From the sequence record KT919973.1: a stretch of DNA of 64,000 nt, one strand, 5' to 3'. The notes beneath the pieces are model-generated. The model was given only the letters and a program-made list of their open reading frames with translations, was not told the origin of the DNA and made no database searches. The position numbers and the translations under genes were made by a program. Positions 1 to 41,919 of the stretch are shown piece after piece (within the stretch, counting starts at the first letter, position 1; each line of letters starts with the position of its first letter).

Positions 1-113
1 CCTCAGATTGAACTTCCTGAATTTGAAACGTTGTCACAGTTGTTAACTAAACGCGCAAGTGATTTTCGCGTATATGACTATGACCCATACCCAACCCTAA
101 AAGGTAAAATGTC

Positions 114-308
114 GTGATTAGTAAAACAGATTATTTTGAACTGAAAACAGGTACGCCGATCATTGTAATTGAGCGAATTGACACAATCGACGGTGAGCTT
201 ATCAAACTTCCGTACAGCAAAGTTGTTGCAGCTAACGACCCGCTCATCGGCGATTCGCTAACTGACGGCAAGATTCACTATCTTTTTGACTTTGAAATTG
301 GTGAGTAA
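114..308 (+). CDS. hypothetical protein
   Basis: 64 aa ORF with GTG start in a co-oriented gene string. Confidence 0.5.
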   Translation: MISKTDYFELKTGTPIIVIERIDTIDGELIKLPYSKVVAANDPLIGDSLTDGKIHYLFDFEIGE

Positions 309-20412: not shown

Positions 20413-21060
20413 ATGAAGCAATTTGGTGAATTTTTAACTGAAGTACAAAAGTACAGTTCCGCAGCAACGTCGATACGTGGTAAAGAAGTAGCAGCACTGG
20501 TTAAACTATACAAGAAAGGTATGTTTACACCGGGTGGTACTGCTCTTGACTATGGTGCTGGTAAATACGGTCGTAACGCTGAATTTTTACGCTCTGAAGG
20601 CATCAAAACGTATGCATATGACAAATTCAATGGTACATCTGCTGATGGTTGGACTGATGTCAGTCTGACTATCCCAAATGGGGAATCATTCGATACGGCG
20701 TTTACTTCTTACGTACTGAACGTTGTACCTGAAGAAGTCGAAGCAGAGATTATTCGTGATGTTGAGTCTCGTGCTCGTGGTAAAGTTTTCCATATCACTC
20801 GCGGTACTGACATTACTCAAACTGTGTTGAACGTGATCAGTGGTAAAAGCAAAAACGATATCATGATGCAATTCATTGCTCAAGAATATCCAGATCTGTC
20901 TATGCAGATTGAAGCAGGTAATGCAACAAGAGACGTGGCTAAAGAAATTGCTACTCGCGGTGTAGTTACAGCGAAAGACAGCTTTCAACGTATTCCAGAC
21001 CTTTCAAAGTACGGTTACAAGAAATCTGGTTCAGGTGCTTCGGTAGTTTGGACAAAATAA
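20413..21060 (+). CDS. class I SAM-dependent methyltransferase with capsid-targeting-like N-terminus
   Basis: ALDYGAGKYGR motif I, YAYD, FDTAFTSYVLNV; starts MKQFGEFLTE. Confidence 0.75.
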   Translation: MKQFGEFLTEVQKYSSAATSIRGKEVAALVKLYKKGMFTPGGTALDYGAGKYGRNAEFLRSEGIKTYAYDKFNGTSADGWTDVSLTIPNGESFDTAFTSYVLNVVPEEVEAEIIRDVESRARGKVFHITRGTDITQTVLNVISGKSKNDIMMQFIAQEYPDLSMQIEAGNATRDVAKEIATRGVVTAKDSFQRIPDLSKYGYKKSGSGASVVWTK

Positions 21061-27477: not shown

Positions 27478-28143
27478 ATGAAACTATCTAAATCTACAAT
27501 CGAAGTACTGAAAAACTTTGCAGGCATCAACAACGGCATGGTTATCCATCAAGGTTCTCGACTACGTACTCAAGACAACTTGAACAAGCAAATCGCTTAC
27601 GCTGACATCGAAGATTCGTTCCCTGTAGAGTTTGCAGTGTACGATCTGGGTGAGTTTCTAAGCGCGTTGAACTTGCTTGACAATGCTGAACTTGATTTCC
27701 AAGAAAAATACGTTGTCGTTACTGGTGATGGTGGTACGAAGCTTACGTTCCAATATGCAAACGCTGAGTTTGTAACTGAAGCACCTGAAAAAGTAAACTT
27801 CCCTACTGAACTAGACGGCGGTGCTGAGTTTGATCTCAAAGGTGAAGATCTACAGCGCGTTAAAAAAGCGTCTGCGACACTAGGTCTTTCTGACATTTGT
27901 GTTCGAACTGAAGCGGGTAGCACTGCAATCACGCTATCAGCTACTGATGCACAAGGTTCAAGCAAACACACGTTTGAAATCAACGTTGGTGAAGTTGAAT
28001 CAGACGTTGAATTCAAGTTCTTCTTCAAAGCAGAGCGTTTGAACATCGTTGACCAAGACTACAAAGTTTCGATTCACCCAGCGGGTATTTCTCGCTTCTT
28101 GGGTCTATCACTTGAGTACTTCATTGCAACCGAAGCACTTTAA
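27478..28143 (+). CDS. 45: sliding clamp
   Basis: MKLSKSTIEVLKNFAGIN..FAVYDLGEFLSAL. Confidence 0.95.
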   Translation: MKLSKSTIEVLKNFAGINNGMVIHQGSRLRTQDNLNKQIAYADIEDSFPVEFAVYDLGEFLSALNLLDNAELDFQEKYVVVTGDGGTKLTFQYANAEFVTEAPEKVNFPTELDGGAEFDLKGEDLQRVKKASATLGLSDICVRTEAGSTAITLSATDAQGSSKHTFEINVGEVESDVEFKFFFKAERLNIVDQDYKVSIHPAGISRFLGLSLEYFIATEAL

Positions 28144-28209: not shown

Positions 28210-29160
28210 ATGAATTTTGATCCGAAAGAACTTCTATGGGAACAACGCTACCGTCCACAAACAATCAACGACTGTGTATTACCCGAGCGCGTGCGTGAAC
28301 ACTTTCAAGCGATGATTGATTCGGGTGAAATCCCAAATATGCTGTTAGCAAGTTCTTCACCTGGTACTGGTAAAACGACTGTTGCGCGTGCTGTGCTTGC
28401 AGATATGGGTTATGAAGTGCTTTTCATTAACGCATCATCTAGTCGCGGCATCAAGCTTGTACAGAACGATTTACCTGCATTCTGTTCGACTGTATCATTC
28501 TCTGGTAAGCCAAAAGCAATCATTCTTGATGAGGCAGACAACTTAACACCAGATGCTCAGAAAGCACTACGTGGTTTGATTGAGCAATACAGCAAAAACG
28601 TTCGCTTTATTCTGACATGTAACTATTCTCAGAAAATCTTAACACCGATTCGTTCACGTCTACAGACATTCGAGTTTGTATACGACAAAGACGAGCGACT
28701 ATCGTGTATCAAGCAAATGATTCTGCGTTCGATGAGTATTTGTAAGCAAGAAGGCATTTCTGTGACTAATGCAGCGGTGTTGAAAGAGCTTGTGAAACGC
28801 AATTACCCAGACAATCGTAAAACTGTTGTTGCGTTGCAGAATTATTCTCGTAAAGGTGTTATCGACGAAGGTATTCTTTCAGAGATCACGGCAAACGATG
28901 ATATTTCTGAAATGATTGCGGCTTTGAAATCGAAAGACTTCAAAACGATTCGCGGTCTAATTCCGAAATACTCTGGCGATCTCGCGTCGTTTCTACATAA
29001 TCTTTACAAAGCGGCATATACTGACTTAGACGGTAATAGCATCCCGACATTCATTCAAATTGTAGGCGAAGCAAACAACAACGCTACAACTTGTGTCGAT
29101 ACTGAAATTCTACTAGCGTACACGCTTGTTCAAATCATGCTTGAGTGTACTTTCGTATAA
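28210..29160 (+). CDS. 44: clamp loader ATPase subunit
   Basis: LWEQRYRPQTI, SPGTGKTT, ILDEAD, PIRSR. Confidence 0.96.
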   Translation: MNFDPKELLWEQRYRPQTINDCVLPERVREHFQAMIDSGEIPNMLLASSSPGTGKTTVARAVLADMGYEVLFINASSSRGIKLVQNDLPAFCSTVSFSGKPKAIILDEADNLTPDAQKALRGLIEQYSKNVRFILTCNYSQKILTPIRSRLQTFEFVYDKDERLSCIKQMILRSMSICKQEGISVTNAAVLKELVKRNYPDNRKTVVALQNYSRKGVIDEGILSEITANDDISEMIAALKSKDFKTIRGLIPKYSGDLASFLHNLYKAAYTDLDGNSIPTFIQIVGEANNNATTCVDTEILLAYTLVQIMLECTFV

Positions 29161-29169
29161 GGGGGTTTG

Positions 29170-29661
29170 ATGGACATCTTTGAATTCCTAGCGAAAGGCG
29201 AAGAAACTGAAGCGAGAATCGCTGAAGAAGAAAAAGAATACGAAGAAGAGCTGAAGAAAGCGAAGAAAGCAGAGAAATATTCACCGTTTGATTTCGTTGA
29301 CAGTATCTACATGAAGAAACGTTTACCAGATGCTGTTGTTGATGAGCAATATCTACCATTTATGGTGAATCGCGCATTGAGCAACGGCATCGATACAGTT
29401 CTTCATGCGTATATCATGGATTCGGTTGGTAGTAAGTTACCGAATGAAATGCAATATGATTATTTGTATCATGCAGTTCGTAAAGGTAAGCGATTCAATT
29501 CATGGGCAAAAGAACCGAAATATGACTATGTTGATCTAATTGTTGAGGTATACAACGTCAATAAATCACATGCAATTAGTATTTCAAATCGTCTAACGCC
29601 CGAAGAGTTGAATCAATTACAAGAATGGTACGACTCACGAACGGGGGGCTTAACACGCTAA
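29170..29661 (+). CDS. 62: clamp loader small subunit
   Basis: YLPFMVNRALS..QYDYLYHAVRKGKRF. Confidence 0.9.
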   Translation: MDIFEFLAKGEETEARIAEEEKEYEEELKKAKKAEKYSPFDFVDSIYMKKRLPDAVVDEQYLPFMVNRALSNGIDTVLHAYIMDSVGSKLPNEMQYDYLYHAVRKGKRFNSWAKEPKYDYVDLIVEVYNVNKSHAISISNRLTPEELNQLQEWYDSRTGGLTR

Positions 29662-30242
29662 ACAGAATCGGGTTTATGTTTGCAGTTGTCATTGTGCCAA
29701 CGTTTGATAGTTGCGGCATTCTTTGAAGATTTGCCGCAATGAATACAAACTGAAATTGGTCTCTCATCCCAACTGTCGCTAATCTTTTTCTTTACATCGC
29801 GTGTTCTCTCAACTCCTTTGAATGTAGACGGTACACCCTTTCGATTACTAGGCTTCCCGACTTTAGCATCACTGAGCTTTTGTTTATGTTCATTGCTCTT
29901 GGGCTTGCCTTTAAGAGAGTCTGAAATATTTCGGCGAGTTGTTTCGGAACGTTTAGTTCCCTTTACACTACCGCCTTCGCCGCCTATTTTGAGATTATAG
30001 GTGTTTTTACTACTTACAAAATTTTCGTTCACTATCAGAGATTCGTATTCATATGCGTCTTCTTCGCAGTCGAACGTTTTTAAAATTATCTTTGTGAAAT
30101 TATCAACACCGTATTTATCAATTGAGCGAAATATAATCTTTCCAGAACCCATGTAACCGTCGTCGATGTTATTCGTTGAGTGTTTACCAATATAAACTTT
30201 ATTGTTTATGTTGTTTATTATTTTATATACGATATGAAACAT
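29658..30242 (-). mobile_element. free-standing GIY-YIG (Seg-like) homing endonuclease with NUMOD3-like repeats
   Basis: IVYKIINNINNKVYIGKH..YMGSG..YN...GG; basic ETRRNISDSLKGK-type repeats; start trimmed to MFHIVYK. Confidence 0.88.
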
Positions 30243-30264
30243 AATAATTCTCTTTATTTTCTGA

Positions 30265-30276
30265 TATTTATAAATA
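30265..30276. promoter_or_regulatory. palindromic bidirectional late promoter
   Basis: TATTTATAAATA contains TATAAATA on both strands, between the endonuclease and regA. Confidence 0.7.
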
Positions 30277-30307
30277 GTGAGACATACATAATGATTACGA
30301 GGCTGCA

Positions 30308-30691
30308 ATGGCAGATTACATTAACAAACTTGAAATTCAATTACCAGACGACGATGCATTTCTAAAAATTCGCGAGACTTTAACGCGAATTGGCATCGCC
30401 AATAACAAAACAAATACTCTATATCAATCGTGCCATATTCTTCAGAAACGTGGCGTGTATTTTCTAGTTCACTTTAAAGAGCTTCTAGCACTTGACGGTC
30501 GATGTGTAGAAATTACTGACGAAGATATTGAACGTCGTAATAACATTGCCAAGTTACTTGAAGACTGGAATCTATGTAAAATCGCGCACCCTGAGTCGCA
30601 CGAATTTACTGGCGATAATAAGTTTCGCGTGATCTCGTTCCGCGATTCTAAAAACTGGAATCTACGATACAAGTATAAGATAGGTGCATAA
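30308..30691 (+). CDS. regA: translational repressor RegA
   Basis: FLKIRETLTRIGIAN..LYQSCHILQKRG.Y..VHFKELL. Confidence 0.97.
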   Translation: MADYINKLEIQLPDDDAFLKIRETLTRIGIANNKTNTLYQSCHILQKRGVYFLVHFKELLALDGRCVEITDEDIERRNNIAKLLEDWNLCKIAHPESHEFTGDNKFRVISFRDSKNWNLRYKYKIGA

Positions 30692-31128
30692 TGAAAACTT
30701 ACACTGAATTTTTGAGCGAATATCACATGCAACACCGAGCGCCGTCACCTCCTGATGACAGCCCTCTGTACGATATCTCATTGACGGGAACATTCCCTGA
30801 AGATGTATACGAAGCGAACGGTCTACGATGGTACGGCAATCACAATGATCGCGATGAGCGCGAGGCGTATCAAATCATCAAACGCTGTCACGGAAACCCG
30901 AATGCGAAAGTTAAAATCTATCGCGCATGTCCCGAGCACGTCAGCGTAATCAACTCAGGCGATTGGGTTACGATTGTCGAGAATTATGCAAAATCGCATC
31001 AAGAGTCTCGCGACTATTCAAGTGAAATTTCAAACGACGATGAGCGTTATCATGTGATCAGTCAAGTTGTACTTGCTAAACAACTCTTCACCGAGGGATA
31101 TTTCCTTGAGTGGGGATACGTTAAGTAG
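30691..31128 (+). CDS. putative internal head protein, ADP-ribosyltransferase-like fold
   Basis: MKTYTEFLSE targeting-like peptide; VKIYRA, GDWVT..YA..H, EWGY. Confidence 0.6.
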   Translation: MKTYTEFLSEYHMQHRAPSPPDDSPLYDISLTGTFPEDVYEANGLRWYGNHNDRDEREAYQIIKRCHGNPNAKVKIYRACPEHVSVINSGDWVTIVENYAKSHQESRDYSSEISNDDERYHVISQVVLAKQLFTEGYFLEWGYVK

Positions 31129-31187
31129 GTATTCAACTTGCTAATAAAATTAAGAGGTGCAAGCCTCTTAATTTTGAGGAATACAAT

Positions 31188-31706
31188 ATGAACGATGAAC
31201 GTTTTCAAGAACTACTACAATTCGGTGGCGAATTCGAAGCTGCCGTTGAGCCTAAGATAGCACGTGTGTTCTGTCATGCAGACCCGCTAGCAATGCTAAT
31301 CAATACAGCTACATCAAAAACAGATCAGAAACATAATCGTGGTCAGCGTTTAATGTTCTGTCAAGACACATCCGCAAGCTTCATGCTACCAGACGTGTTT
31401 GTTTTCACAAAAGGCAAGCAATTCTGTGTTGAAATCAAGTGCAAGAAACGCTTTTATCGCCACTCAGATGGTAAACTATATGGCGTAATCGACTCATACA
31501 AAGTTAAAGAGTATCGCGACGCAGTTCGCCACATGGGATTCGATGGTATATTCTATGTGTTTGGCGACGAAGAAACACGCTCGGCTTATTTTTCAAAAGA
31601 CAACCCGATTGATATGAAAATCGATGCGTTTCGCGAATATAAGAACCCGAAAGGCGAGTTCAAGGCTTGGCTTATCGAAGAACAACACTTTTTAGGGAAA
31701 TGGTAG
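31188..31706 (+). CDS. putative PD-(D/E)xK nuclease
   Basis: FE..V ... LPDVFVF..CVEIKCK motif. Confidence 0.6.
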   Translation: MNDERFQELLQFGGEFEAAVEPKIARVFCHADPLAMLINTATSKTDQKHNRGQRLMFCQDTSASFMLPDVFVFTKGKQFCVEIKCKKRFYRHSDGKLYGVIDSYKVKEYRDAVRHMGFDGIFYVFGDEETRSAYFSKDNPIDMKIDAFREYKNPKGEFKAWLIEEQHFLGKW

Positions 31707-31766: not shown

Positions 31767-34319
31767 ATGGCAATCTATACATCAATTGAACGAATCGGCT
31801 CTAATCTTTGTGAACGTTATTTAGATGATGACGGGTTTGAGCATATGCGCAAAGTCAAATATGAACCGACTCTGTTCATTCACTGTAACGAAGAAACTGG
31901 TTACAACGACATCTACGGTCGCAACTGTCGCCCAAAGATGTTTGACACAATGGGCGAAGCTAGTAAGTACATCAAAGACACTAAGCAGCATCATGAAGTA
32001 CTCGGTATGGACGACTTCGTTGTAACTTATATCTCTGATACTTACAAAGAACGTAACTTCGACATCAATCGTATTCGAATTGCAAATATCGATATCGAAA
32101 CCCCGTCTGTTGAGTTCCCTGAAGCAGCGCACGCTCCAGTGCCTATTACTTCAATCGGTCACTATGACAACATCGACGATAAATTCTACGTTTACGGTAT
32201 TCCATCAAATGAAGAATGGTCGCGTGAAAGCAGCATCGTTAAGCCAGAACTTCTAGAAAAAACAGTGTATATTCGCTGTGCAACTGAAAAAGAGTTACTT
32301 GTTAAGTATCTGCAATTCTGGCGCGAAAAGACCCCAGCAATCGTAACAGGTTGGAACATTGAATCGTTCGATATGCCATACATTGTCAATCGATACAAAA
32401 ATCTGTTTGGTGAGAAGGTGATGAATAGCTTGTCACCGTGGGGTAAAGTTCACATTTCGACGATGACTAACGATTACGGTCAAGAAATCTGTAAAGTGAA
32501 TATCGTCGGCGTATCTGAACTCGATTATCTTCAGCTTTACAAGAAATTCACTTACGTGACTCGACCATCTTATCGTCTTGATTACATCGGTGAAGTTGAA
32601 CTTGATGAGAAAAAAGTTGAGTTTACACAAGCGAACTACTTAGAGTTCTATGAGCAAGATTATCAGAACTTCATTGACTATCAGATTCAAGACGTTAACT
32701 TGGTTAAACGACTTGATGAGAAACTTCAGTTGATGCTTTTGACTGTTTCTCTAGCGTACTATGCGGGTATCAACTATCAGACAGTACTTGGTACGATTAA
32801 ACCGTGGGATGCAATCATCTTCAACAGTTTGAAAGCTGAGAAGAAAGTAGTACCAATGATGACATCGCACGAAGGTGGTCGATTCATGGGCGCGTTTGTA
32901 AAAGCACCACAAGTGGGTTATCATCGTGGCATTGGCTCTTTCGACTTAACATCACTGTACCCGTCGATTATTCGTGAGTGTAACATTTCACCAGAAACAA
33001 TCGTTGGTCAGCTTGACTATGAAGGTACACTTGAAGATCGTATCGACAAGATTGTTGACATGGCTATTACGTTCCCTGCTGATGACATTTCAAACAGCGC
33101 GAACGGTATGCAATATCGCAAAGACGTGCGTGGTGTAATCCCGATTGAGATTGAGAAAGTCTTCTTCCAGCGTAAAGCTAATAAGAAGAAAGCGTTCGAA
33201 TACGAACAGCAAGCAATCGACATCAAGAAAAAAATGGACGAAGAAGGTGAAACACCTGAACTTCGTGAAGCATACGAGCACGCGAAACATGAAGCGAAGA
33301 TCTACGACGTACAGCAAATGGCTCGTAAGATCTTGATCAACTCACTCTATGGTGCGTTAGGTAACGAATACTTCCGCTTCTACGATCTACGTAATGCAGA
33401 AGCTGTAACAGCATACGGTCAGCTTGCAATCAAATGGGTAGCGCGTGACGTTAACATCTGGTTGAACAAAGTTTGTAAGACAACTGACAAAGACTACGTG
33501 ATTTACGGTGATACCGACTCAATCTACGTTAACTTTGATCCGCTTCTTGAACTTACTGGCGTTAACAAACTTGAAGGTGATGAATACACAGATAAATTCT
33601 CTAAAGTCTGTGAGACAGTTGAAACGAAAGTTATCAACCCGTCATACGAAGCACTGCACAAGTACATGAACACGTATGAGCGTCAAATGTTCATGGACCG
33701 AGAAGTTCTAGCACGTACTGGTTTCTTTATCGCGAAAAAGCGTTACGCGCTTGACGTACAAGATAACGAAGGCATTCGTAAACCGAAGCTGAAAATCATG
33801 GGTATTGAAACTCAACGTAGTTCAACACCACCACTTTGCCAAAAAGGTCTTAAAGAAGCAATTCGTTTGATTCTGCAAGAAGGCGAAGAGAAGCTTCAAG
33901 AATTCGTTAAAGAGTATGAGAAAGAGTTCAAAGTAGCTCCGTATCAAGAAGTGTCGTTTGTGTCTAGCGCGAACAACATGAACAAATACTCTGACGAGCA
34001 AGGTAACCCAGGTAAAGGTTGTCCAGGTCATGTAAAAGGTGCGTTGTACTACAACAAACTAGCTGCACAGCATGGGTTCGACAAGATCAACGAAGGTGAT
34101 AAAATCGCTGTTGTGTTCTTGACTCGAAACAAACACGGCATTGACCGTATTGCTTACCCGTCTGGTGGTAAACTACCTGAAGCAATCTCATACTTGATTG
34201 ACCACGTAGATTACAATCGTTTGTACGAAGACAAGTTCATCAAACCATTGACTGCGATTTCTGAAGCAATCAAGTTTGACTACAAGAAAACCATCACATT
34301 GGAGAGCTTCTTTGGCTAA
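31767..34319 (+). CDS. 43: family B DNA polymerase
   Basis: DIET exonuclease, [25 protein letters not shown]. Confidence 0.98.
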
Positions 34320-40467: not shown

Positions 40468-41919
40468 ATGAAACAATTTAACGAATTTTATCAAGAAGTT
40501 CGCCTTGATGAGATTTCTGATCGTGCGAATATCGACATTGATTGGGATTGGGGTCATGAGAACGGGACGGGCGAGACTTCAGCGAGATTCGACGCTGCTG
40601 GTGAGCGATTTGAAGTTGGTGTTGAAGAAAGCAACCCTGGTTATTTCACTATTACATTCCAAAACTCAGGTGGTTATGCTCAGACAGGTAAAGCAGGACA
40701 CTCTGCGGCTGCGGTATTCTCTGGTGTATTGACGACTCTACGTGAATTCACCGAGACGTATGAAGAAGAAATGGGCATGAAGCCGTATGAATATGACTTC
40801 AGCGCAGCTTATGAACTACCAAAGAATCACGAGTACTACGCACTTGTTAACAATCGACGCGAAGCGACTCGTTTAGATGAAGAAAGCAAGAAGAAGCTAT
40901 TGAAAGACTTGATTTCTCGTCCGATGCTTTACTACGCTCTATCGTTGACGTTTGGTAAAGAATACGGCTATTCGACTGACATTAGCGACCGTTGGCTTGC
41001 ACGTCTAGCAGGCGGTGCAAACGATTTCCGCTCTGTTCGTAAGAACGTGACGCGCAGTATTCTTTCAATGAGCGACAGCGACGTTAACCAAGCGTTGATG
41101 AGCATGAGTGGTTCTGTCTCTTTCACACTTACTAACGAGAACGAGCGTGCTAGTAGCTACGATACAGCATTCGGTGGCGGACCGTCTCTTGAAGATTTTG
41201 TTGATGAAGCAGATCAATATCAAATCGAAGCATGGATCAATGAAGGTCGTGAAGATGAAATCATTGAACACGCAGATTGGCAAACTCTAGTTCGTATTGC
41301 TAGTTGGGGTCTGATGCACGAAGAGCTGATTTTCCACGATGACGAAGACGTTCGTGCAGCGGTAGTTGAGTCAGATTACGAAATGGGCGATAAACTTGCT
41401 TCATCTGGCGATTGGCAACACCGTAAACAAGCTGCGGACATGGGTTTTGGTATTTGGGATCTTGTTCTTGACTCAGATGAAGATGTACGGGACACAGCGT
41501 GGGATTGGTCATTCTCAAACGACGATGCAGACACACGTATCACATATGCGAAACGCTACGAAAGTGAATTCGGTCGCGATATGGCAGAAGATATCTGGGA
41601 TAGAATGATCGATGATACAGATGATTACGAAGAACGCCAATACGTAGCCGAACAAGGTTATCGAGTTGAGGAACTTCTAGCAGACCATGATGAAGACGTG
41701 CGCGAATCTGCAATTGGTGCGGTATTTAACGTACTGGGGTTAGATGGTCGCGAAGCTGCTGAGTTCTTGATGAATAACTCAGATCCATATCAAGAAGAGG
41801 TGTTTGAATACGCTATAAATGGTAACTTCGGTCCGTCATTTGATGAAGCACTTATTGAGCTTGCTGAAGAAAACGGCGTTGATGTATCTGAGTACAAAGA
41901 CGACGAAGACGAAGAATAA
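40468..41919 (+). CDS. putative internal head protein with HEAT-like repeats
   Basis: MKQFNEFYQE start, CTAAATA upstream, three D(D/S/H)DEDVR repeats. Confidence 0.7.
   Translation: MKQFNEFYQEVRLDEISDRANIDIDWDWGHENGTGETSARFDAAGERFEVGVEESNPGYFTITFQNSGGYAQTGKAGHSAAAVFSGVLTTLREFTETYEEEMGMKPYEYDFSAAYELPKNHEYYALVNNRREATRLDEESKKKLLKDLISRPMLYYALSLTFGKEYGYSTDISDRWLARLAGGANDFRSVRKNVTRSILSMSDSDVNQALMSMSGSVSFTLTNENERASSYDTAFGGGPSLEDFVDEADQYQIEAWINEGREDEIIEHADWQTLVRIASWGLMHEELIFHDDEDVRAAVVESDYEMGDKLASSGDWQHRKQAADMGFGIWDLVLDSDEDVRDTAWDWSFSNDDADTRITYAKRYESEFGRDMAEDIWDRMIDDTDDYEERQYVAEQGYRVEELLADHDEDVRESAIGAVFNVLGLDGREAAEFLMNNSDPYQEEVFEYAINGNFGPSFDEALIELAEENGVDVSEYKDDEDEE

Follow-up and report, generated by a model that had tools for sequence, protein, structure and literature searches.

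A candidate head-delivered protein of Vibrio phage phi-ST2 with a T4-like capsid-targeting leader and a predicted ADP-ribosyltransferase-like domain shared with polyvalent phage proteins

We analyzed a 64,000-nt stretch of Vibrio phage phi-ST2, a KVP40-like Schizotequatrovirus (record KT919973.1; this whole stretch is called the window below), and focus here on ORF145, a small gene that directly follows regA. Its product starts with a peptide resembling the tag of the T4 internal proteins (IPs), and its predicted fold resembles that of the ADP-ribosyltransferases (ARTs), with two invariant residues that would lie at the positions where ARTs bind NAD and catalyze. ORF145 is therefore probably an enzyme that enters the host together with the phage DNA. 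In full, our best explanation, though a tentative one, is a head-tagged accessory effector in which a capsid-targeting leader is joined to an ART-like enzyme domain and travels with the DNA. A first-pass annotation of the window had proposed a minimal injected ART at this place. Beyond that proposal, our results show that ORF145 is not a one-off: its domain is a module of a huge domain family of polyvalent proteins, in which it often lies beside a bona fide ART domain. The predicted ORF is a real gene, and it divides as follows.

30691..31128, plus strand: ORF145 (phiST2_0328, ALP47520.1), 145 aa, ATG start overlapping the regA stop; leader plus ART-like domain
30691..30720, plus strand: leader, codons 1-10 (MKTYTEFLSE), T4-type capsid-targeting-like, with a candidate prohead-protease site before Tyr11
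30721..30861, plus strand: N-terminal subdomain, residues 11-57 (DYxGxHxAP...PLxDLT...YPxDIY...RYYG), pLDDT 80-97
30862..31125, plus strand: predicted ART-like core, residues 58-145, from the AlphaFold2 (AF2) model and the VIA-align and Foldseek lists

The leader MKTYTEFLSE is identical at 7 of 10 positions to MKTYQEFIAE, the N-terminus of both IPII and IPIII as read from NC_000866 (IPI starts with MKTFKEFTST). Isoleucine is replaced with leucine at position 8 and Glu10 is kept. As the first-pass annotation had stated, this is the best match to the T4 tag among all the window's ORFs of at least 50 aa; the next two, at 20413 and 40468, reach 5/10. Residues 8-10 (L-S-E) agree with the L/I-x-E with which leaders end in T4-type proteins carrying a capsid-targeting sequence (CTS). 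The T-even IPs are diverse and have no conserved feature apart from the CTS, which suffices to encapsidate foreign proteins (PMC3012670). In ORF145 the end of the leader coincides with the start of the conserved domain: Tyr11 is kept in 156 of 158 instances, domain copies within large proteins start at profile position 8-10, and residue 8 is where the alignment with the mycobacteriophage homologues begins. A cut after L-S-E10 would thus free precisely the domain.

Comparable leaders were found on solo relatives encoded by T4-like phages. They read MKTFKQFCE before SDY in a gene upstream of the baseplate genes gp25/gp6/gp7/gp8 (P0078), MKTFKQFIKEE before DY in a gene with a tail-sheath stabiliser on one side and the large terminase and tail sheath on the other (L057), MFSFKKFIFE before SY downstream of the major head protein (L076), and MLTFKQFMSENS before DY near a helicase and gp47 (L045). 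Within the genus, the more distantly related Vibrio phage 1.081.O encodes a 217-aa family member (NVP1081O_040, L095:2501-3154) at a different locus, after nrdD. Its leader is MYSFSEFINLAE, before SDY, and a perfect T4-type late-promoter motif, TATAAATA, lies at -33. On balance, packaging of ORF145 into the head is slightly favored. Like T4 IPII and IPIII, ORF145 is a small protein of a T4-like phage with the decapeptide MKTY.EF..E and L/I-x-E before the putative mature N-terminus, and like the T4 IP genes it is accessory and variable between relatives (PMC3012670). It differs from them in its place behind regA instead of in an IP locus and in its cargo, which is a conserved domain of enzyme-like character and not, as in IPI, a small inhibitor.

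The two runners-up to the T4 tag are a 215-aa ORF at 20413-21060 (plus strand, start MKQFGEFLTE) and a 483-aa ORF at 40468-41919 (plus strand, start MKQFNEFYQE), for which Pfam gave only a sub-threshold HEAT repeat match. The leader MK[QK]LLTEWRKFLKE is common to two neighboring family genes on a 178,630-bp IMG/VR contig (L013:5672-6483). The 1.081.O protein carries the helical insert typical of most family members.

At the level of the family, residues 1-144 of ORF145 align with positions 331-461 of the 472-position profile phrog_2579, called 'ParB C-terminal domain' (E 1.1e-49), and the VH7D orthologue bears the same name in RefSeq. This name says no more than that the domain comes after a ParB-like nuclease domain in some phage proteins. 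It has no relation to the genuine C-terminal dimerisation domain of ParB, and Pfam gives no ParB match on the ORF145-type region; the HerB/YfjB D4 domain, which is helical, is unrelated as well (PMC13370423). A profile search of 1.84 billion representatives (clusters at 50% identity) matched 3780 clusters at E<=1e-3, of which 1156 also reach E<=1e-30. At least 546 family loci are present in IMG/VR, and the family's clusters in the ESM Atlas are 88-100% viral. Among the top 154 family proteins, 44 have up to 260 aa, 73 have 261-700 aa, 12 have 701-1500 aa and 25 exceed 1500 aa (maximum 4187 aa). The large ones also hold NUDIX, GNAT, DUF7178 and DUF5661 domains, some have two or three copies of the ORF145-type domain, and ParB_N is another partner, ParB-like N-termini being present within phrog_2579. 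Matches in BFVD include proteins titled 'Large polyvalent protein associated domain-containing'. The ORF145 domain is a polyvalent-protein-associated module that occurs among unrelated enzymatic domains and also solo. Giant polyvalent proteins are predicted to be packaged in the virion and injected (Iyer et al. 2017, PMC5512222). We found no paper characterizing the family; it is unmentioned in the main text of two Aravind-lab viral ART surveys (PMC9503650, PMC7824862), though the supplements of the first may contain a prior computational recognition.

An ART-PolyVal-like domain (vYHGT...NP...gyDg) is also present in 24 of the 154 proteins, and in about 10 it ends 3-45 residues before the ORF145-type domain. 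Both domains are modules of giant injected phage proteins that also occur solo and are often fused side by side, but the candidate active-site residues of ORF145 are R...E and not the H-Y-D of ART-PolyVal (PF18760; Iyer et al. 2017, PMC5512222). Membership of ORF145 in ART-PolyVal was rejected: PF18760 does not match ORF145, hhalign gave a probability of 0.07, and in the fusions PF18760 marks the neighboring domain, as in P0062, where it covers residues 13-71 and the ORF145-type domain residues 124-253. The cassette of an ART-PolyVal-like and an ORF145-type domain with a gap of 3-45 residues recurs in P0062, P0031, P0092, P0118, P0138, P0039, P0074, P0128 and P0135, and cassettes with GNAT or DUF5661 recur in P0007, Gordonia phage Skog, P0026 and P0028.

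The AF2 model built from a 91-sequence alignment reached a pLDDT of 92.7 and a pTM of 0.84; an earlier run with 6 sequences (pLDDT 59) was discarded in its favor. It contains helix 4-14, short helices at 37-48, helix 54-66, strands 73-81 and 92-94, helix 97-113, and strands 120-128, 132-134 and 141-143. Comparison with ART folds, the check that the first-pass annotation had suggested, showed that the solved structures nearest to this confident model are overwhelmingly of the ART fold. The two best Foldseek matches in the PDB are the Vis ART toxin. With VIA-align, a search independent of Foldseek, about 40 of the 50 nearest of 48,161 representatives belong to the ART superfamily, as judged by entry titles. 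CNFy domain 4 (D4) is the best, and the list further includes Tpt1/KptA (three entries), BC2332, pertussis S1, Vis, TreTu, TreX, EcPltA, Arr, the diphtheria and Chelona toxins, PARP2/10/13/15, SRO1, MbcT, two RES toxins, Scabin, ParT, LT, Tse6, Tne2, IcmQ, AvrPphF, an iota-like toxin, SdeA, an ART-ARH toxin and C3. A second structural look again placed Tpt1, CNFy and Vis at the top. Independently, the ESM Atlas gives Arr and PARP as the nearest named clusters when features are compared (0.77, a lead only), and DUF3990 when structures are compared (TM 0.40). ART-like is the best available fold assignment because of the enrichment of ART proteins in these lists, not because of any single score. 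On the model, an ART-like fold distinct from both Alt/Mod and ART-PolyVal is likely. The first gene of the L013 pair (106 aa) lacks the conserved N-terminal subdomain and begins directly at the strand KVKIFRAQP, so the ART-like core can exist alone.

The motifs singled out by the first-pass annotation, IYRA (76-79), GDWVT (90-94), YA..H (99-103) and EWGY (140-143), are all present and contain the most conserved positions of the family. Across the 91-sequence alignment P25, Y40, R78, P81, D91, W92, H103 and E140 are invariant, and Y11, H15, P18, D38, Y48, Y77, A79, G90, Y99, A100, G142 and Y143 are kept in at least 90% of sequences; in the N-terminal subdomain, Y11, H15, P18, P25, D38, Y40 and Y48 are near-invariant. 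Among 233 HMM pieces, E140 is kept in 162/163, Y40 in 158/159, H15 in 158/160 and R78 in 163/178. ORF145 itself has all invariant family residues; its differences from the consensus are G104 (Q), S138 (F) and D56 (E), besides a short insert at 105-118. Read from the sequences, the pattern of H15, Y40, R78, P81, D91, W92, H103 and E140 is enzyme-like.

In the model, Y77-R78-A79 lie in strand 73-81, GDWVT at strand 92-94, Y99, A100 and H103 in helix 97-113, and E140 just before strand 141-143. Residue correspondences with known ARTs were taken from alignment end points, the ends being assumed ungapped. On LT (1ltb_A; model 75..145 on chain 4..117), K75-I76-Y77-R78-A79 falls on R4-L5-Y6-R7-A8 and E140 on E112; in LT/CT, R7 binds NAD and E112 is the catalytic Glu. 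By the same end points, E140 falls on pertussis E129 (7skk, ..145 to ..134), Scabin E160 (5ewk, ..165) and C3stau2 E180 (1ojz, ..185), the catalytic Glu of each. GDWVT and the YA..H helix are placed where ARTs have STS and a helix; D91 and W92 are invariant there and the Thr is variable. The ART-like spacing proposed for these motifs therefore holds in the model for IYRA on strand 1, for GDWVT plus helix and for EWGY at the catalytic strand, but does not extend to a conserved middle Ser. A second Glu/Gln two residues before E140 is also lacking. With neither of these, the family departs from a strict R-S-E definition.

Compared with the R-S-E ARTs (cholera/LT A1, pertussis S1, C3, Scabin, Vis), ORF145 shares a predicted split beta-sheet core, a strand plus helix at the STS position, 'IYRA' on strand 1 where LT has 'LYRA' (R7), and, by alignment end points, Glu140 at the position of LT E112, PT E129 and Scabin E160. 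Unlike them, it has no detectable sequence homology, D-W-V-T in place of S-T-S, no ExE-type second Glu/Gln and no sixth strand after the Glu, and it possesses a strongly conserved 45-residue N-terminal subdomain unique to its family. The minimal ARTs of the AcrIF11, Tpt1/KptA and Arr types are not related to ORF145 in sequence and have His on strand 1, where ORF145 has Arg. T4 Alt, ModA and ModB (Alt/VIP2 clade, PF03496) are likewise phage-encoded, with modification of a host target at the start of infection as the role that we also propose for ORF145; Alt is packaged in the head and injected, which is the route proposed here. ORF145 nevertheless belongs to a different family, without a Pfam ADPrib_exo_Tox match, and is far smaller (135 mature residues). 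Of the earlier suggestion of a minimal ART distinct from Alt/Mod, the likely ART-like fold and the separation from Alt/Mod stand, whereas sequence or profile homology to ART-PolyVal-like or KptA/Tpt1 domains is missing. NAD-dependent catalysis by ORF145 is plausible, if short of probable.

In the mechanism that we propose, the 10-residue leader would bring ORF145 into the prohead scaffold and the prohead protease would remove it after Glu10. This would leave a 135-residue enzyme domain, of which the C-terminal 90 residues would form a minimal ART-like split beta-sheet, with invariant Arg78 on strand 1 and Glu140 at the start of the last strand at the positions of the NAD-binding Arg and the catalytic Glu. 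As infection starts, the phage would eject the mature protein along with its DNA, and the protein would modify a host macromolecule with the use of NAD+, or act on it in another way. Inside the injected polyvalent proteins, the domain presumably has the same role.

The gene is accessory. At 97% DNA identity or more, ORF145 is found in only seven phage records, namely phi-ST2, VH7D (two records), R10Z, R11Z, Va3 and PVA23; an 88%-identical homologue is present in another sample. About 440 bp are missing exactly at the regA junction, with both flanks aligning, in KVP40, nt-1, phi-pp2, 6E35.1a, the D48x/K5xx phages and others, which bears out the insertion between regA and the polymerase region that had been proposed. 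Some phages without ORF145 have a homing endonuclease at the regA junction instead, and in 6E351A regA is directly followed by an orthologue of ORF172. In profile searches of whole records, phi-ST2 and VH7D each had a single family copy; KVP40, phi-Grn1 and 6E35.1a had none. ORF145 is an accessory gene of the phi-ST2/VH7D lineage. Its G+C content (45.7% vs 40.8% in the surroundings; 47% vs 40% for GC3) is mildly consistent with a later acquisition. The surroundings of the gene are listed below.

27478-28143: gp45 clamp
28210-29160: gp44
29167-29661: gp62
29658-30308, minus strand: GIY-YIG/NUMOD3 homing endonuclease, likely ATG near 30243
30269..30276, plus strand: T4-type late-promoter motif TATAAATA, 31 nt 5' of the regA ATG
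30308-30691, plus strand: regA (PF01818, 2.5e-72)
31145-31176, plus strand: terminator-like hairpin, 14-bp stem then U-rich; dG -19.3 kcal/mol, z -4.3 by folding
31188-31706, plus strand: ORF172 (172 aa), phrog_18573
31767-34319: gp43 DNA polymerase

The regA stop codon is shared with the ORF145 ATG in a TAATG junction, and this overlap probably couples translation of the two genes. The hairpin 3' of ORF145 occupies the same place as the hairpin found directly after regA in KVP40 and phi-Grn1. From the TAATG overlap and the hairpin together, ORF145 therefore appears to be inserted inside the regA transcription unit. The motif TATAAATA at 30269..30276 could allow late transcription of regA and ORF145.

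KVP40 (L004:673-699) and phi-Grn1 (L005:673-699) have a mini-ORF of 8 codons, MRREEDWF*, which overlaps the stop codon of regA (TAATATG) and whose end is just 5' of the terminator hairpin. It is kept in both of these phages without ORF145 and could be what remains of the coupling to a gene since lost, or else a small ORF with a regulatory role. In phi-ST2, TATAAATA motifs overlap on both strands of the intergenic region between the homing endonuclease and regA (30265-30272, minus; 30269-30276, plus). This pair would suggest late promoters firing in both directions, apparently brought in with the GIY-YIG/NUMOD3 endonuclease, a Seg-like gene between gp62 and regA of which KVP40 has no copy. Wherever the annotation of a Schizotequatrovirus was checked, ORF172 separates gp43 from regA/ORF145. 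Its sequence contains a PD...E-x-K-like motif (PDVFVF...CVEIKCK) and matches the Cap4 endonuclease faintly in NCBIfam (E 0.023), and it may be a PD-(D/E)xK nuclease-fold protein.

Several results weigh against a head-delivered ART. ORF145 had no match in Pfam (hmmscan, E<=1) or NCBIfam, neither of which has a model for the family, and PDB sequence and profile searches with ORF145 and its alignment gave no match either. By hhalign, the family shows no profile homology to ART-PolyVal-like domains or to KptA (probability 0.18), and homology to Tpt1/KptA (PF01885) was rejected at the sequence level. Residue 94 varies between T, A, G and S across the family, so that the canonical middle motif (STS or Tyr) is not kept, and the correspondences with known catalytic residues come from end points rather than from a printed alignment. 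The frequent position of the ORF145-type domain directly after ART-PolyVal or GNAT fits an accessory or targeting module too. As to delivery, ORF145 is coupled to regA in an early/middle replication cluster and does not lie among head genes. The window holds 5 matches to TATAAATA where 3 are expected, so the phi-ST2 site alone is not significant. The sole published particle proteome of the genus is that of 6E351A (PMC12028318, Table S4), a phage without ORF145 or any other family member.

One alternative accordingly concerns packaging: the N-terminal helix would merely resemble the T4 tag, and ORF145 would be an early/middle cytoplasmic protein made with RegA. We regard this as a serious possibility, but as the less probable one. 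It agrees with the overlap of the ORF145 start with the regA stop, with the position of the gene 5' of the terminator-like hairpin that ends the regA unit, with the replication-gene locus, and with the absence of a leader from the mycobacteriophage and polyvalent-protein homologues. However, by a rough estimate chance would give about 0.01 matches of 7/10 to the tag over all the window's ORF starts, and the leader stops exactly where the domain begins, L-x-E directly preceding Tyr11. Similar leaders occur on solo homologues of several T4-like phages, which lie within late structural clusters, and TATAAATA is found 5' of regA-ORF145 and again 5' of the 1.081.O homologue.

The main alternative to the enzyme reading is that the domain has an ART-like scaffold but is no ADP-ribosyltransferase. 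It would then be an accessory or targeting module, or would perform other chemistry, in cooperation with a preceding ART-PolyVal, GNAT or ParB-like nuclease domain; it might, for example, bind a host target, nucleic acid or NAD/ADP-ribose, in the manner of CNFy D4 or IcmQ, whose ART-like domains are non-catalytic. CNFy D4 is the best structural match, and we know of no demonstrated ADP-ribosyltransferase activity for it. The ART-PolyVal-like neighbors described above, the GNAT domain directly upstream in P0007 and Gordonia phage Skog, the ParB-like N-termini in phrog_2579 and the lack of conservation at the canonical STS/Tyr position point the same way. Still, we find this account rather unlikely. 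H15, D38, Y40, R78, D91, H103 and E140, invariant across thousands of diverged clusters, look catalytic and not adaptor-like; the solo forms are common (44 of the 154 representatives) and work without a partner domain; and different ARTs in tandem are known from polyvalent proteins (PMC5512222).

That a small alpha/beta sandwich resembles the ARTs by coincidence, the domain being a new fold or an enzyme class unrelated to NAD chemistry, is unlikely given that one superfamily provides some 40 of the 50 nearest structures, that Foldseek and the ESM Atlas agree, and that the invariant Arg and Glu fall on ART catalytic positions by alignment end points. The BECR/MuF-C RNase fold, considered for the polyvalent context (PMC5512222) and for a weak BFVD match to a 'MuF C-terminal domain-containing' polyprotein (E 0.05), was set aside because the PDB structure lists contain no barnase, RelE or colicin chain.

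A head-tagged effector with an ART-like domain thus remains our preferred reading of ORF145. A bolder version, which we consider doubtful, makes ORF145 the founding solo example of a new and very abundant clade of minimal R...E ART enzymes with a unique H/D/Y-rich N-terminal subdomain, to which T4-like phages added a capsid tag. The result would be an enzymatic 'internal protein', a second head-delivered NAD-dependent modifier besides Alt, with a new class of target. If the ORF145-type domain is such a clade, it would be among the commonest unannotated modules of injected phage polyvalent proteins.

ORF145 is present or absent between near-identical phages (phi-ST2/VH7D vs KVP40/phi-Grn1), so natural isogenic-like comparisons are at hand; these phages infect aquaculture vibrios and are candidates for therapy. 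If the domain is an active ART, ORF145 would be a small (135-residue), solo and easily expressed representative for target finding. Thousands of phage proteins now called 'hypothetical' or mislabelled 'ParB C-terminal domain' would gain an annotation, and the phage ADP-ribosylation toolbox would gain a new catalytic clade. With its T4-type head tag fused exactly to a polyvalent-protein module, ORF145 connects two routes of delivery that had each been studied on its own, the T4 internal proteins and the giant injected polyvalent proteins.

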